A stretch of DNA of 64,000 nucleotides from Podarcis melisellensis (taxonomy: Eukaryota): NCBI GenBank assembly GCA_964234715.1, contig OZ174275.1. One strand, 5' to 3'. Below the pieces are notes generated by a model that ran no database searches, was not told where the DNA came from, and was given only the letters and a program-made list of their open reading frames with translations. Made by a program: the position numbers and the translations under genes. Numbering within the stretch: the stretch's first letter is position 1; each line of letters starts with the position of its first letter. Below are positions 4,657-58,639 of this stretch, piece by piece.

Positions 4657-4794
4657 GAATCATAGAACTGAATCATAAAATCATAAAATTGGCAGGGACC
4701 CTAAGGGGCATCTAACCCAAACTCCTTTTGCCCAACGTGGGTCTTGAACCCACAACCTTGAGATTAAGAGTCTCAGGCTCTACTGACTGAGCTA
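4657..4794 (-). mobile_element. tRNA-Lys(CUU)-derived SINE with CR1 3' tail
   Basis: Reverse complement of 4730-4794 is TAGCTCAGTCAGTAGAGCCTGAGACTCTTAATCTCAAGGTTGTGGGTTCAAGACCCACGTTGGGC, nearly identical to vertebrate tRNA-Lys-CTT but lacking the 5' acceptor strand. It is followed by a CR1-type tail (TTAGATG...GGGTCCCT...ATGATTTTATGATTC). Confidence 0.8.
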
Positions 4795-13486: not shown

Positions 13487-13798
13487 AGTCGAAACAAAAT
13501 AAAAAAAATCCTTCCAGTAGCACCTTAGAGAACAACTAAATTTGTAATTGGTATAGGCTTTTGTGTGCATGCACACTTCTTCAGATACACTGAAACAGAA
13601 GTCACCAGACCCTTATATATAGTGAGAGGGTGGGGAGGGGTGTTACTCAGAAGGGTGGTGGGAATGGGTGATTGGCTGATAAGTGTGGTAAACCTGTTGG
13701 CAACTGTTATCATGTATAATGAGATAAAGCTATTTTTAGCCATCTCACCCCTTGCTTTTTCCTGTAAGACCAATTGCAGTCATTAACAGTCATCAACA
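13487..13798 (-). mobile_element. Penelope-like element terminal (pLTR) fragment with promoter and mutated hammerhead motif
   Basis: Shares CCTTCCAGTAGCACCTTA...GTGTGCATGCACACTTCTTCAGATAC with the 57671 copy and, in part, the 13945 and 23953 copies. Minus-strand CCAAT (13671-13675) and TATATATAA (13613-13621). Internal inversion TGTTGGCAACTGTTA / TAACAGTCATCAACA. Confidence 0.8.
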
Positions 13799-13944
13799 TG
13801 AGTGGAGAGTGAAGAGCTGGACTCTAGTCTGATAATGCAGCAATATGTTACAATGGTGTTTTTGTTTGTTTGATTGATTGTTTGTTTGTTACTATTTATT
13901 ATCAGTGTCGTCATTAGACATAAAGCACTGTCAAAAAATTGACA

Positions 13945-14078
13945 GTTACAGATAGGTAGCCGTGTTGGTCTGCCATAGTCAAAACAAAAAAAATTCCTTC
14001 CAGTAGCACCTTAAAGACCAACAAAGAACTAACTTAGTTGGTCTTTAAGCTGCTACTGGAAGGAATTTTTTTTGTTTT
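13945..14078 (-). mobile_element. Penelope-like mini insertion folded as a hairpin, ribozyme absent
   Basis: 12-bp TSD AAAAAATTGACA (13933-13944, 14079-14090). Inverted arms 13981-14022 and 14037-14078 with one mismatch. Terminus GTTACAGATAGGTAGCCGTG. Confidence 0.88.
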
Positions 14079-14904
14079 AAAAAATTGACACTTTTTCCAG
14101 CATGCATAATAATGCATTGCAAACAAAATAAGCACCATAGTTACATAAATAACCAGTAAAAAGCTAACACTAGATGTTCCAGAAATGCATATTCTTATTA
14201 AAATATAATTGAACTTCCTCATTAGAAAAAACCCCTCTACAAATGTTAATACACTTAAAATATTGCTCAGGTAGCTATTGAAGCAAGAATAATAGAAATG
14301 TGGTTTGCATCTGAAAATAGCTGTGCTTAGCATATGGGAGCATATTTTTAAATGAGGTCAGAGAGATCCGTATCAAATAAAATTGTGAAACATGTAATTA
14401 TATACCAACTCCATCATTAAAATGTCTACATTTACTCAGTTTCTCAGGCAATGGTGTGGCACAAAGTACAATTAGATAGATATAATTGTGTTATGTTCAA
14501 AAGTGTCCCTTTAAGTATAACTGTAGCATGGTTTCCATTGTTATCTTTTCCCCCTTGTTAAACATTTAAATTATGTTTTAAGGCAGCACAGAAACAACCA
14601 ATAGGAAACAGATGGCCAGTCATGATATATTTTCTGTTAACCCAGTCCTACCCACCTGTAAATCCTGCATTAGCCAGTATCATTGGGTTGAATCCAAAGG
14701 GATTTCTACTCACATTTACACACTTGAGTAGATTATGAATTATTTCTGCTGATTCTTCCATTCAGTGGCAGCTTCCTGCAAATATATCCACTTTGCTACT
14801 GATGATCCCTCTACTTTCAGGGTAGAGTCTTCAAGAGGTCAGAGAAAGGGGGGAGAAAACTGATTTGTTGGTTCCAACTCTGCTGAGTAGAGACGAACAG
14901 CAGT

Positions 14905-22890: not shown

Positions 22891-23952
22891 GAAGATAATT
22901 AAAGTAAAATATAATTACAGAGGAATAGAGGAGGTGATGATCTTGTAAATACGTTTGAACCAAGCTAATTTATAGGTCAAAATGTGCACTTTGAATTGTA
23001 CCCTGAAGGCTGCAAGATGCCACATAAGCAGGGAAGCATGAAGTTAAGACAAAATGCTCGCTATTGCATTCCATGAAAACAGAATATGAGGGGGGAAAAT
23101 GCTACTGGGAGCCTATCCTGAGCCATCACAACAAAATTGGATAGGAATAATAAGAAATGAATATTCAACCAAAATAATGAATGAAGAAAGCGACTGAATG
23201 GCTGATTTTCAAGTAATGAGCATAGTCAATTTCCTCACATTTTATACAGCACAAAACAAGTTTCCATCAGGAAAGTCACAAGGCATATCCCTTTCCAGAT
23301 GTTTTATTGAATTATTTAAATACATGAGTCTATTAGCACCAATTCATGTCAGCGCTACACTTCAGGTGTGAAACGATCTTAAACGAATATCAGATAAAGG
23401 ATGGACCTGTTGCAGCAATAGATTTACTGTTATGGATTTAAGAGGTCTCCACTGTATTCACATTACTTTATTGCCATTTAGTGCACTCTAATTAAAAATA
23501 AAAAGACTTCTCCTTGCCTTCCCCCCTCTTGTGCATTTCTGGAGTGATTTAGCTTTAAAGCGAAAGAGCAAATGACAGATCACAGGAAAATGTTAAACTA
23601 TAAATCACCTACTTCTCTGGACACACTGACTATTTATGAGGTTGGAGGGTGAATTCTAGTTAACTTTCCAGGCATTTGGATACATTAATTCACCTGCGTC
23701 ACTGTATCCACCATGCACCATACTTCTGTGGATGTTAGTTACTGCCATACTGAAAACCTGACAAACATTTAGCAGGTCCTTGCCGGTTCCAACTGAGCCA
23801 TGTTGCAGCCTGGCAGAATGACTGCAGTGGGACACTGAAACATGCAATGCATAGAGGTATCAGTTCAGGTTGCTAGCAATGACCTCTGGTCATTGTAAGG
23901 GAAGAACAGACAGGAGGACAAATCAAGTTTATCCATATTTTAGAGGTGTTTG

Positions 23953-24084
23953 AGTTACAAATAGGTAGCCATGTTGGTCTGCCATAGTCAAAACAAAAAA
24001 AATTCCTTCCAGTAGCACCTTAAAGACCAACTAAGTTAGTTCTTGGTATGAGCTTTCGTGTGCACGCACACTTCTTCACACTTC
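23953..24084 (-). mobile_element. Penelope-like mini insertion truncated inside the hammerhead motif
   Basis: 14-bp TSD TTTAGAGGTGTTTG (23939-23952, 24085-24098). Same terminus and body as the 13945 and 57671 copies. Stops at CTTCTTCA (24078), followed by a CACTTC filler. Confidence 0.9.
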
Positions 24085-24225
24085 TTTAGAGGTGTTTGGT
24101 TAGAGGTGGGCTCTAGCTTTTTCTAGGGGTGGGGGAACAAAAAGAAGCTGGCTGTAAAGCCAAGGGAGAATGAGAGAAATACTGCCAAGATTTCAGGGAG
24201 GGGTTTGTTTGGCTTACCTTCCATC

Positions 24226-32273: not shown

Positions 32274-32401
32274 NNNNNNNNNNNNNNNNNNNNNNNNNNN
32301 NNNNNNNNNNNNNNNNNNNNNNNNNNNNNNNNNNNNNNNNNNNNNNNNNNNNNNNNNNNNNNNNNNNNNNNNNNNNNNNNNNNNNNNNNNNNNNNNNNNN
32401 N
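32274..32401. other. Assembly gap (128 N)
   Basis: Run of N. Confidence 1.
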
Positions 32402-33236
32402 NTAGGGATAAGTGGCAACCCTAGCTATGGATCATCTACTTAGAATAATTCAGACCCTTAATCAGCATTTATACTTGGTTTTAACATTTCAGGCCTTAAA
32501 TGGTCTTAAATAAATGATAGGAGGTGACTATAGTGCCGGATTATGAACCTGTCATTTCCCACATTTATATTTATGCTAGAAGCTAGAATGGTTTTTTCTT
32601 TTTATCTAGACCGATGCCCAAGTGACGCTGTCATTACCTTTTGTCCTGGTATAAAAATGCTGCATATTTATCAAAAGCAGGCACCACAAGGAATATGGAT
32701 AGATACACACATACAGATAGACAGAGATACACAGACAAACAAAATCAGAGGGTGAAATAGAGCAAAGTTTCTTTAAAAACACTCCCTCCCCCAGCAGCAG
32801 TTTGTTCTTTTTAAGAGCAAATGAAACTGCAGACATTAAAATTAAATCAGAGCAATTTCATGAAAGGAACAAAAAATGTCAAGACCAGTGAAACACATGC
32901 ATAACTACATAATGAAGAATCCAAAAGGAAAATTGGCTAGGAAAAAAAGAACATATGTGAGAAAAGACTATTCTTGAAGTCTACTGTGCAGTAACTATCT
33001 CAAAGCCTTAAAAATATATGAAATGAATTATCACCCTCTACTCACTTCATACCACTTATAATGAACATCAGGGAAGGGCTTTTTCTAATGCAAGAAAATT
33101 CTATCCATCCATCCCTATTATGAGGCTCATTCATCTGAGGTACAAATCATTTTCATTTCTGATTTTGAGAGCTTCATAGGGGAGGATTGCTTATTCATTT
33201 AAAGCAGATTCAAAGAATATCCCATATGTTATAGTA

Positions 33237-39973: not shown

Positions 39974-41100
39974 GAGAGCCAGTGTAGTGTAGTGGTTAAG
40001 AGCAGTGGACTTGTAATCTGGTGAACCGGGTTCGCGTCTCCGCTCCTCCACATGCAGCTGCTGGGTGACCTTGGGCTAGTCACACTTCCCTGAAGTCTCT
40101 CAGCCTCACTCACCTCACAGAGTGTTTGTTGTGGGGGAGGAAGGGAAAGGAGAATGTTAGCCGCTTTGAGACTCCTTAGCAGTGGCGTAGCGTGGGTTGT
40201 CAGCACCCGGGGCAAGGCAAGTAATTTGCGCCCCCTAACCCCTGGATTTTAGCACTCGAGTGCGAGCGCGCCCCCCAGATGTTGCGGCCGGCCCCCCTGC
40301 ACCCCCCACGCTACGCCACTGGGGCTGGGGGCGAGCGAAGGAGCCAAGGACCCCCCCTTAAGGCTCAGCAGGAATTTATTAAATTTATTATTTGCGGCGC
40401 CCCCGCGGGCCGAGGCAGCCAAAGCCCCCTCCCCTCGGGCGCCTCCCCGCCCCCTCCTCTCCTTGGGCTGTAGGTGGAGCCCGCGCTCCGAGGCGCTGCA
40501 GATCGGGGCTTGGCGAGCGCCTCTCCTCCCCCCGGCCTGGACCGGGGGCTTCCAGCCGCGCTCCGTCCTCGCCCGACCCCCCCTCCCCCCGCAGCTGAGA
40601 GTTGCTCTGAGAGCCGGAGCCAGCGGCGCCCCCTTCCGCCGGGAGATCATCGCCCGCCCGCCGGCCTCCTCTCGGAGGGTGTTGGGGAGCGCAGGGCGCG
40701 GCGAGGCCCCTCGGAGCTCTCCTCCCCCCCAGTCGGCAGAAGCAGCCGCCGCCTGTGGCTGGGCTGAGGGGATGGCGGCGGCGGCGGGGTGCGGAGGCTG
40801 CCCGTGCCGGCCAGGCGTTGGTGGTGGCGGCGGCGCTGCTGCAGCGGCTGCTCCTCCTGCGAGCAGTGAGTGGAGCGCAGCCGCAGCAGCGGCGGCGGGG
40901 GGCGCGCGCGCACTAGGGCGCAAGGCTGGCGGTGGCGGCGGGGAGCCCGGCGGAGGAAGGAACTTGTCCCTTCCCTCTGGACTCGCGCCCCCCCCAGAAG
41001 TTGCGCCCGGTGCGGCCGGCACCCCTGGCACCCCCCACACTACGCCACTGCTCCTTAGGGTAGTGATAAAGTGGGATATCAAATCCAAACTCCTCCTCTT
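39974..41100 (+). mobile_element. Squam3-type (MIR/Ther1-derived) SINE split by a hAT insertion (39974-40179 + 41059-41100)
   Basis: A box GTGTAGTGGTTAAGAGC, B box GGTTCGCGTCTC, core GGGTGACCTTGGGCTAGTCAC. The 3' end AGCCGCTTTGAGACTCCTTAG|GGTAGTGATAAAGTGGGATATCAAATCC and CT-rich tail rejoin cleanly when the insert is removed. Confidence 0.9.
40180..41050. mobile_element. Compound non-autonomous hAT (Tip100-like TIR) element carrying GC-rich captured DNA
   Basis: Perfect 8-bp TSD CTCCTTAG (40172-40179, 41051-41058). TIR CAGTGGCGTAGCGTGGG / CCCACACTACGCCACTG. An extra internal right end finishes at 40321. Interior is very GC- and CpG-rich. Confidence 0.92.
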
Positions 41101-41214
41101 ATTACTGGTTGGATATTATAGCCCTAAAGTCAGACTGTGATTGTTCATACTGATAGATTATACTATTCTATTGATTATACTATTCTACTGGATTTCTCCC
41201 TGATTTGGATATTA

Positions 41215-56240: not shown

Positions 56241-57724
56241 ATAAAATAGGAAAGATCCTATTCTATTCTAAATAGGAGAGCTACATTTCAGCTAAGCCCT
56301 AGATAGGACAGCAATAGAGACTTGTCATTTCAAAAATATTTATGCTCTCTCTTTGTAGAGATCCAGTGGAATAGTGACACTTTCTTCAAGATCTGATGCA
56401 TCTCATTTCAGATTCCTTGCTATTCCCTAATTATTGGCAGCCATCAGCCAGCCATTGTGGGCTGTTAACTAGCATTCTGTCTCATAAAGGAATTGTAAGG
56501 CAGAAACCACAATAGCACAGTTTGCCAGTAAAGTTTAAAACTCTGCTGCTATATTATCTCTTCTCCCTGAAGACATAACCCAAGATAAACAACTTTACCT
56601 TCACTACTAGCCAGCCTAAGGATTTTATTTCTCCAGTTACTTTTATCCCTTTCTCTCTGTTTTGTTTTCTTTGCACATTTGCATGTGAAATGAGAAAATT
56701 TTGCATTAGCTTGGCGAACTAGCTCCTTGGGACATTTATACCTTGTACTTGGCACTGTGCTGTTGAAGCCTATAGACCATCCACATGATGAGCTATTCAA
56801 TGCATGTCTACCAATTTTAAGATTGCTTCTTAACATCTGTTCAGAATTTGTTCATCCTGATGGCCCAGACATCCTTTGTGCTTGGCTGAACATGGTAACT
56901 TATGATTACTCCATTTATGCCAGTTAAAAATCTAAACAAGTGCATCAGTGTGCACTCTGGTTTGTTTGCCTTTATGAATATATTGAGTTTAACTTTTTGG
57001 TGCCTTTGGGGGTTTCATTCTGAAATGCAAGAAACTCTTTTAGACAACAGCTACAGCATTATCATATGGGAAGCAAACAAGTGTTCTCCCAAGTCTGTCA
57101 ACCTCCCCTTCAACTTTCTGTTATTACATTATTATCTATCACTTCAAGTTAACGCTGGTGCTACATGTAAAAAGGCACTTTATTGCTAGATTAGATTAGG
57201 GTGCCCATATGTACTACTTTCCAGAGGTCAGTTGAAGGGCTTTCCAGTCCGAATCCAGTTTAAAACTTTAAATTATAGTCACTGCCCCACAAACACTGCG
57301 TGTCTCTGCCTTATGGATGGGCTCAATATGCTCCCAACTCACCAGAGTCCCCAAGGGAGCAGCACAAAACAGATTGTGGCACCGCACAAACACCCCACTT
57401 GTTAAATTTCCTCAGTCCTTCCCCTTTCCTGCTGGTCTAGTAGGGGAGATGGTGGCTTAACAATCAGCCCCTCTCCCCATGGAGCTCTGAGAATTATAGG
57501 GGCTTTCCTAACAGCTAACTACAGCTCCCAGGATGCTCTGGGGGCAGCCATGATTGTTTAAAGTGGGATGATACTGCTTTAAATGTGTACTGCAGATGGG
57601 GGGGGTCTTACTAGGCTGGCTCTGTCAGCTGTGATAGAAAGAGCAGCACTATATGAAAAGACAGAAGTGGAAACAAAAAAATGCCTTCCAGTAGCACCTT
57701 AAAGACCAACTAAGTTAGTTCTTG

Positions 57725-57762
57725 GTATGAGCTTTCGTGTGCATGCACACTTCTTCAGATAC
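57725..57762 (-). ncRNA. Minimal type-I hammerhead ribozyme motif, intact core
   Basis: Minus strand GUAU CUGAAGA A GUGUG-CAUG-CACAC GAAA GC UC^AUAC: CUGANGA and GAAA core, 5-bp stem II, stem I GUAU/AUAC, loop-less palindromic stem III (AGCU). Predicted cleavage between 57729 and 57728. Confidence 0.8.
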
Positions 57763-57768
57763 TTCTTC

Positions 57769-57806
57769 GTATCTGAAGAAGTGTGCATGCACACAAAAGC
57801 TCATAC
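57769..57806 (+). ncRNA. Hammerhead motif with G12A core mutation (predicted inactive)
   Basis: GUAU CUGAAGA A GUGUGCAUGCACAC AAAA GCUC AUAC; GAAA is changed to AAAA at 57795. Confidence 0.65.
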
Positions 57807-58506
57807 CAAGAACTAACTTAGTTGGTCTTTAAGGTGCTACTGGAAGGCATTTTTTTTGTTTTGACTATGGCAGACCAACACGGCTACCTATCTGTAGACA
57901 GAAGTGGGTGACTGTATACTTGAGAGAAAGGATATATACATTAAGATTGATGTGTTGATGCTTATTATATTCAATCTTAATATGAGATTATGGTGTTTTT
58001 TCTCCTTTATGTGTCTTTCCCTTTTCTTTTATTCTTTCTTTCTCTGTTAAATATGTTATAAAATTAAAAATAATTTTCAAAAAATAATCATCAACCCAAA
58101 CAAAAGACCTCTGAGCTGATGTTGGGAGGAAGCCATCGATGCAATGCAATGCATTCCTTCCAAGGCAAACAGCAGCATCTGAAGAATGATTTTTCACCAG
58201 GATTGCAATTGTGGAGAGGCAGATTAAAGGTTTGTTCCCCTTCCCACTTGATTTGCTCCCAGTGGCTGCTGTCTTCATTTTTTTTAACAACACTATGAAC
58301 ATTATATACAAATACATATTTAATGTCATGTCCAGCTTGGCTGTCAGTTTGTAGCGAAGGTCTATCTAATCAAACTACCCCATTCAATCCCTGCCCAGTC
58401 TAAAGCCAGAATTGCTTTGAGAAATTGCTTAATTGAACTCACTTGTGTGAAAATGCAAATTATGCAATGCATTTTTTAGCCTTCCAAAGTTGTAAACTGA
58501 AAAGTT

Positions 58507-58639
58507 NNNNNNNNNNNNNNNNNNNNNNNNNNNNNNNNNNNNNNNNNNNNNNNNNNNNNNNNNNNNNNNNNNNNNNNNNNNNNNNNNNNNNNNNNNNNNN
58601 NNNNNNNNNNNNNNNNNNNNNNNNNNNNNNNNNNNNNNN
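58507..58639. other. Assembly gap (133 N)
   Basis: Run of N. Confidence 1.

Follow-up and report, generated by a model that had tools for sequence, protein, structure and literature searches.

A palindromic insertion of 225 bp with a minimal hammerhead ribozyme motif (min-HHR) in each of its arms was analysed in a window of 64,000 nucleotides (64 kb) of Podarcis melisellensis DNA (assembly GCA_964234715.1, contig OZ174275.1). The insert is very probably a dead-on-arrival integration of the RNA of a Penelope-like element (PLE), in which no more than the last ~95-125 nt of that RNA were copied. Its derivation from the end of a PLE is supported by anatomy and literature, because min-HHR architecture, a one-sided tail, a short target-site duplication (TSD) and an inverted 5'-truncated copy are combined in it, and with these characters and their published parallels the Penelope origin proposed in an earlier note, which had been made from the sequence alone, was corroborated. 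The inserted piece itself is inert DNA without promoter and open reading frame (ORF) and with one hammerhead hit by CpG decay; the hammerheads are passengers of the terminal repeat of the parent and no function of this locus.

Anatomy and age of the insertion

Inspection of the sequence and a repeat search placed the insert between two perfect direct repeats of 12 bp, AGACAGAAGTGG (Table 1), and at the edge of the left TSD the homology with other copies in the window stops exactly in the alignment. Inverted arms of 88 nt each (57675-57762 and 57769-57856), which are 99% complementary, were delimited by the repeat search. If one indel in a T/A homopolymer is allowed, arm pairing reaches 57671 and 57861, and the resulting arms of ~92 nt differ by one substitution in addition to this indel. 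Insertion length, TSD and hairpin arms had been given in the earlier note exactly to the base, as sequence, repeat search and RNA folding showed. The inner position is common to sense copy and inverted copy, while the outer end points differ: in the alignment the right end of the insert displays an extra stretch of 34 nt without counterpart on the left. By blastn, the right (sense) unit is 97.5% identical to copy A and 95.9% to copy B, two further copies described below, and the insert possesses neither an ORF nor the CCAAT/TATA promoter that is present in another one, copy C. Since the TSD is perfect and the arms are only ~1% apart, the insertion is young, as had been proposed before.

That both arms came in one event follows from the single 12-bp TSD which brackets the whole structure. 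This bears on the assumption that a plain 5'-truncated insertion was later turned into a palindrome by inverted duplication, or that the palindrome is a fold-back artefact of the assembly. Replication errors can yield palindromes and long-read chimeras can create fold-backs; however, apart from the single TSD, copy A independently follows the same rule of a one-sided tail, and the arms differ at a CpG and at a homopolymer, which is unexpected from a simple artefact, so that this explanation is regarded as highly improbable.

For the RNA of the insert a single hairpin was predicted, at -163.5 kcal/mol on the plus strand and -174.3 kcal/mol on the minus strand, compared to a mean of -48.7 kcal/mol in shuffled sequences (z = -26.5). 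Sub-threshold matches to microRNA (miRNA) and leader families of Rfam (MIR1222, mir-559, mir-466 and others) were obtained alike on both strands, for example with 64.1 against a gathering score of 90 and 59.9 against 95. Identity as a miRNA precursor was rejected with regard to these scores and to the same matches on both strands; the matches are considered spurious, because any long perfect hairpin gives such scores on both strands.

Table 1. Position of the insert, of its parts and of further copies of the same 3' end in the 64-kb window.
Feature	Position	Strand	Remarks
Insert	57671-57895	sense arm +	225 bp, TSD 12 bp; fold-back, junction at 5' edge of hammerhead, tail on sense arm only
Left TSD AGACAGAAGTGG	57659-57670		exact 12-nt repeat
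Inverted 5'-truncated copy of PLE 3' end	57671-57762	-	tail-less; outer end ...GTTT; 97.8% identical to right unit over 93 nt (blastn), alignment
Central spacer TTCTTC, head-to-head junction	57763-57768		6 nt; templated upstream bases or junction filler
Sense 5'-truncated copy of PLE 3' end	57769-57866	+	up to proximal end point ...GTTTTGACT; alignment, blastn
One-sided tail ATGGCAGACCAACACGGCTACCTATCTGT	57867-57895	+	29-30 nt, AC-rich, ATG at start; sense arm only
Right TSD AGACAGAAGTGG	57896-57907		exact 12-nt repeat
Intact minimal type-I hammerhead motif	57762->57725	-	sole descriptor match in window
Hammerhead copy with G12A	57769-57806	+	A at 57795; deviates from min-HHR core at G12
Copy A	13944-14078	-	135-bp fold-back; 11-bp TSD GTCAATTTTTT at 13933-13943 / 14079-14089
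Copy B	23953-24084	-	132 bp, single orientation, 5'-truncated; 14-bp TSD CAAACACCTCTAAA at 23939-23952 / 24085-24098
Copy C	13487-13680, 3' end 13487	-	older, other subfamily, ~89% identical; decayed hammerhead; 5' border undefined

Hammerhead motifs in the two arms

The motif on the minus strand reads GUAU/CUGAAGA/A/GUGUGCAUGCACAC/GAA/AGCU/C^AUAC. It is composed of a helix I of 4 bp (GUAU/AUAC), the core C3-A9 (CUGAAGA), one unpaired A, helix II (GUGUGCAUGCACAC, from G10.1 to C11.1), G12-A14 (GAA) and the palindromic A15.1-G-C-U16.1 (AGCU), followed by C17. The presence of one hammerhead per arm, with an intact core on the minus strand and G12A on the plus strand, was claimed in the earlier note and could be confirmed base by base; the position given there for cleavage, after CUC, agrees with this reading of the motif, in which the cut is predicted at 57729/57728.

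Published min-HHRs of PLEs combine 4-5 bp in helix I with a long helix II that begins with the pair G10.1-C11.1; one base between positions 9 and 10.1 is unpaired, and 15.2-16.2 is palindromic (PMC4209133). From published min-HHR features a descriptor was written for this analysis, which matched once in the 64-kb window and not at all in 200 first-order-Markov random sequences of 64 kb, both strands being scanned. Every item (core, H17, helix I, unpaired base, G10.1-C11.1, long helix II and palindromic 15.2-16.2) was found in the minus-strand copy, which accordingly resembles the min-HHRs of PMC4209133 in all features, including a palindromic AGCU that would need a second molecule for helix III. 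Unlike the min-HHRs listed there, one of the two copies here carries G12A, and activity is only predicted. This exchange is a CpG transition that postdates the insertion, because CG is retained in the partner arm (57736-57737) and CGAAAG in copy B. Among the only four copies in hand, helices I and II are nearly identical in the alignment.

Hammerhead-type pairing, i.e. helix I together with helix II, was the predicted minimum free energy (MFE) fold of the isolated 38-mer with -6.8 kcal/mol and was kept in the predicted MFE folds of the 92-nt and 127-nt units. Helix III is possible only between molecules, via AGCU, in line with the published dimer model. Helix II is itself a perfect palindrome of 14 nt with a central ATG (57737-57750 / 57781-57794), which recurs at the corresponding place in copies B and C, and by RNAcofold two units were predicted to pair through it (dimer -30.6 kcal/mol vs 2 x -6.8 kcal/mol). 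The model thus hints that the RNA dimerises through helix II in addition to AGCU. It is a minor and rather unlikely possibility that the two palindromes pair two element RNAs as a domain-swapped dimer, which, if formed, might be the actual substrate of cleavage or of the dimeric reverse transcriptase (RT).

Further copies of the 3' end in the window

With the right arm, extended as far as the TSD (57769-57895), taken as the repeat unit, three further copies of a retroelement 3' end of ~130 nt were detected in the window (Table 1, copies A to C). Copy A is a second fold-back; its junction lies ~45 nt further downstream than that of the insert, inside a small AAGAACUAACUUAGUUGG hairpin of the element itself, hence at a different inner position, and it is without hammerhead. 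Copy B starts 4 nt inside the hammerhead and ends with ...CTATTTGTAACT; GAAA is intact in it, but it lacks C3 as well as the 5' strand of helix I. Copy C keeps the promoter of the upstream pseudo-long terminal repeat (pLTR), namely CCAAT at 13675-13671 and TATATATAA at 13621-13613, with an initiator-like TCAGT 19 nt downstream of TATATATAA and immediately before the hammerhead; it ends with ...GTTTCGACT. No TSD was found for copy C in a scanned range that ended short of the true flank. A second copy of the junction of the insert was not present in the window, where hammerhead sequence was confined to the copies already listed.

According to the alignment, a tail of 29-33 nt, ATGGCAGACCAACACGGCTACCTATCTGT(AACT), occurs on the sense arms of the insert and of copies A and B (33 nt in A and B) and is absent from both inverted arms, i.e. 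those of the insert and of copy A, and from copy C. The two inverted arms stop at GTTT/GTTTT, not more than 1 nt apart, and the end of copy C, GACT, lies 4-5 nt beyond. By these alignments the family has two alternative 3' end regions ~30 nt apart.

The inverted repeats, long, near-perfect and within a direct duplication, could also be taken for those of a fold-back DNA transposon, similar to a miniature inverted-repeat transposable element (MITE), whose terminal inverted repeats (TIRs) happen to come from a PLE end. Yet the ends are asymmetric, the 34 extra nt being found on the right only, the arm junction varies among copies, and copies in single orientation with TSDs share the same 3' end. 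TSDs of 12 bp (insert), 11 bp (copy A) and 14 bp (copy B) moreover show the pattern of target-primed reverse transcription, unlike the footprint of a transposase. Of all explanations weighed here, the transposon is considered the most improbable.

Comparison with published Penelope-like elements

The hallmarks of PLE integration recur in the window: a head-to-head inverted, 5'-truncated copy within one TSD in the insert and again in copy A, the optional one-sided tail, and TSDs of short, variable length. PLE insertions in which a tail at one end accompanies an inverted 5'-truncated copy are reportedly already treated in the work of Evgen'ev and Arkhipova from 2005. PLE insertions were described as highly 5'-truncated and often adjoining an inverted 5'-truncated copy, with a tail of 30-40 bp that is often found at one end only (Craig et al., 2021, PMC8557442). 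In a rotifer, the typical Penelope structure shows inverted pLTRs within TSDs of 8-10 bp, one of them with a 31-bp tail, and a TATA box that precedes an initiator-like site by 20 bp; palindromes seen where inverted copies join were interpreted as self-priming (Arkhipova et al., 2013, PMC3846280). Pairs of min-HHRs that lie 100-700 bp from each other on opposite strands were also noted, most motifs being solo remnants of truncated PLEs (Cervera & de la Peña, 2014, PMC4209133), and minimal PLE hammerheads are also the subject of Lunse et al. (2017), as far as the citation in PMC6765202 tells. The insert resembles such insertions in head-to-head terminal copies within one short TSD, the tail at one end, the hammerhead of the terminal repeat and heavy 5' truncation, and the longer copy C resembles them in a TATA promoter just upstream of the hammerhead. 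The insert is unlike typical PLE insertions in that nothing, neither an ORF nor a full pLTR, is found between the inverted ends and only the last ~95-125 nt are represented.

Another close system is Poseidon_Ac of Anolis carolinensis (PAc) with its protein-assisted hammerhead. In vitro the Poseidon protein cleaved and extended both DNA strands, reverse transcription started at two internal sites that lie in AC-rich sequence 111-118 nt into the ORF, the tail corresponded to the sequence between these sites, and the hammerhead cleaved only with the protein present (2024, PMC11167929). Short motifs of the Poseidon_Ac consensus were compared by eye with those found here. A plan consisting of a TATA box and then CUGAGGA-U-helix II with ATG-GAAACGUC in Poseidon_Ac is shared. 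Both hammerheads further show 3-4 bp in helix I, then CUGANGA, a single bulged base, ~7 bp in a helix II that holds an ATG, and GAA plus a 4-nt palindrome plus C. Likewise, two alternative 3' end points ~30 nt apart are common to both, the distance from cut to insertion end is 93 nt here and about 85-92 nt in Poseidon_Ac (counted from the positions in PMC11167929), and the distal AC-rich motif, GACCAACAC in the tail here, is close to GACAACACA in Poseidon_Ac. The proximal end point, in contrast, lies in a T-rich stretch here and in an AC-rich one in Poseidon_Ac; unlike in Poseidon_Ac, helix II is a perfect 14-nt palindrome, its ATG opens a frame of only 9 codons, and the sequence outside the core is unrelated. 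Because the sequences differ outside the shared motifs, the source appears to be another PLE family and not Poseidon_Ac itself. From the ATG of the tail an open frame of 11 codons (MADQHGYLSVT) reaches the end of the insert. As judged from the frames, the ORF of the parent may start in the tail, unlike that of Poseidon_Ac.

Several results weigh against the reading as a PLE end with a hammerhead. In the window no ORF with RT or GIY-YIG was linked to the terminus, and the 10 longest ORFs were without such Pfam match; translations revealed no coding remnant upstream of or around copy C, where the region is non-coding. A scan of metagenome contigs with a conserved core of 19 nt returned only two chance bacterial coding regions and no more copies. 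The search with Hammerhead_1 (RF00163) of Rfam, which the earlier note had named as a check, was negative: no hammerhead family came up at the gathering score, nor did relaxing the threshold to E<=10 yield one, whether 351 nt or 53 nt were searched. Furthermore, published PLE min-HHRs are weak in vitro (PMC4209133) or protein-dependent (PMC11167929). In a full-text literature search for sequence strings of the unit no paper was found. Presumably the unit resembles squamate repeats, an assumption taken as a lead only.

Retrozyme-like unit or passenger

The earlier note had gone further and read the palindrome with its two hammerheads as a 'mini-Penelope', a young, non-autonomous, retrozyme-like unit, with the hairpin as a built-in off switch; on this view the palindrome itself would propagate and the switch would have evolved as such. 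The insert is indeed short, ORF-less, flanked by a TSD and young, hammerhead motifs are present, and it is like animal non-LTR retrozymes in being PLE-derived and ORF-less with a type-I hammerhead (Cervera & de la Peña, 2020, PMC7229834; Li et al., 2026); animal retrozymes were derived from PLE pLTRs in the preprint of Li et al. (2026). However, retrozymes are tandem direct repeats with hammerheads on the same strand, which are excisable and circularised, whereas the insert is an inverted pair with motifs on opposite strands and without tandem repeat, and cannot be. A transcript of either strand contains one hammerhead and its own antisense, never two; because the hammerheads lie on opposite strands, one per RNA, both a dimer in cis and the excision of a unit are ruled out. 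Copies A and B were inserted with another junction or none, the tail is restricted to one arm, the junction is unique within the window, and the TATA/CCAAT promoter kept in copy C is absent from the insert, which cannot transcribe itself because it has neither this promoter nor an ORF. In addition, the hairpin would make the RNA a poor template. A retrozyme-like unit is therefore very unlikely, and the claim of a 'mini-Penelope' could not be upheld; 'non-autonomous' applies only in the trivial sense that the insert has no ORF, and a distinct propagating unit is not indicated.

As regards the off switch, the energetic part of the claim stands, as in predicted folds the hairpin overwhelms the hammerhead by more than 150 kcal/mol (-163 to -174 vs about -7 kcal/mol). 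Its 'built-in' character does not, since the switch is a geometric by-product and nothing suggests selection. It is likewise unlikely that PLE integration routinely leaves behind near-perfect hairpin loci, built from the RT-recognition end and the hammerhead of the element, which, read through in host introns, supply double-stranded RNA (dsRNA) for silencing of the active family by small interfering RNAs (siRNAs) or PIWI-interacting RNAs (piRNAs); if true, such loci would be a self-generated brake on the PLE family instead of an accident.

Proposed mode of integration

Under the preferred reading, the integration of a truncated PLE RNA, the palindrome would be an integration scar made anew each time, since the copies in the window have different inversion junctions or none. 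A PLE ribonucleoprotein with its GIY-YIG endonuclease would cut the target with a stagger of 12 bp, which would give rise to the TSD. Reverse transcription would then start internally on the RNA, from either of two closely spaced sites, and so account for the optional tail, synthesis of cDNA from the distal site on one strand yielding the sense arm with tail. For the second arm two options are conceivable: extension of the other DNA strand, beginning at the proximal site (two-strand priming, cf. Poseidon of Anolis in vitro), or fold-back of the first cDNA, which then served as its own template (self-priming).

Two-strand priming is slightly favoured over self-priming, because two independent inverted arms end within 1 nt, as from a defined start site. 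Against this stands that the arms of the insert share their inner end exactly, which self-priming explains no less well than two-strand priming does, and that at the junction of copy A the 3'-terminal CTT of the cDNA can pair with AAG 6 nt upstream, as self-priming would predict. The idea that the shared inner end of the arms marks the transcription start, with TCAGT 3 nt upstream in copy C, was dropped, the inner end of copy A being different.

Other features of the window

The only Rfam match above the gathering score in the window was tRNA-like (4737-4794, minus strand, 44.3 bits, model positions 8-63 of 71) and may be the head of a tRNA-derived short interspersed nuclear element (SINE), or a tRNA gene or pseudogene. 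Overlapping ORFs of 279 aa (minus strand) and 225 aa (plus strand), the longest two of the window, lie at 40249-41140 in a GC-richer stretch; neither had a Pfam match. Runs of N are located at 32274-32402 (129 bases) and 58507-58639 (133 bases), the second of them ~600 bp downstream of the insertion.

Significance of the insertion

The layout found here was already described for PLEs, and the insert is an ordinary by-product of PLE integration. As a single locus it matters little, being a textbook case of the tiny fold-back PLE fragments with solo min-HHRs that litter non-mammalian vertebrate genomes. For the annotation of such genomes it advises caution, as the hammerhead models of Rfam miss the motif and miRNA models give spurious sub-threshold matches on palindromes of this kind. 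Its modest value lies in a clean, young and base-resolved case, with one TSD and arms that end at the proximal and at the distal outer end point, respectively. These ends fit the picture obtained in vitro, in which reverse transcription can start at two sites and both DNA strands are extended, and a genome-wide tally of junctions could make this picture testable in vivo.

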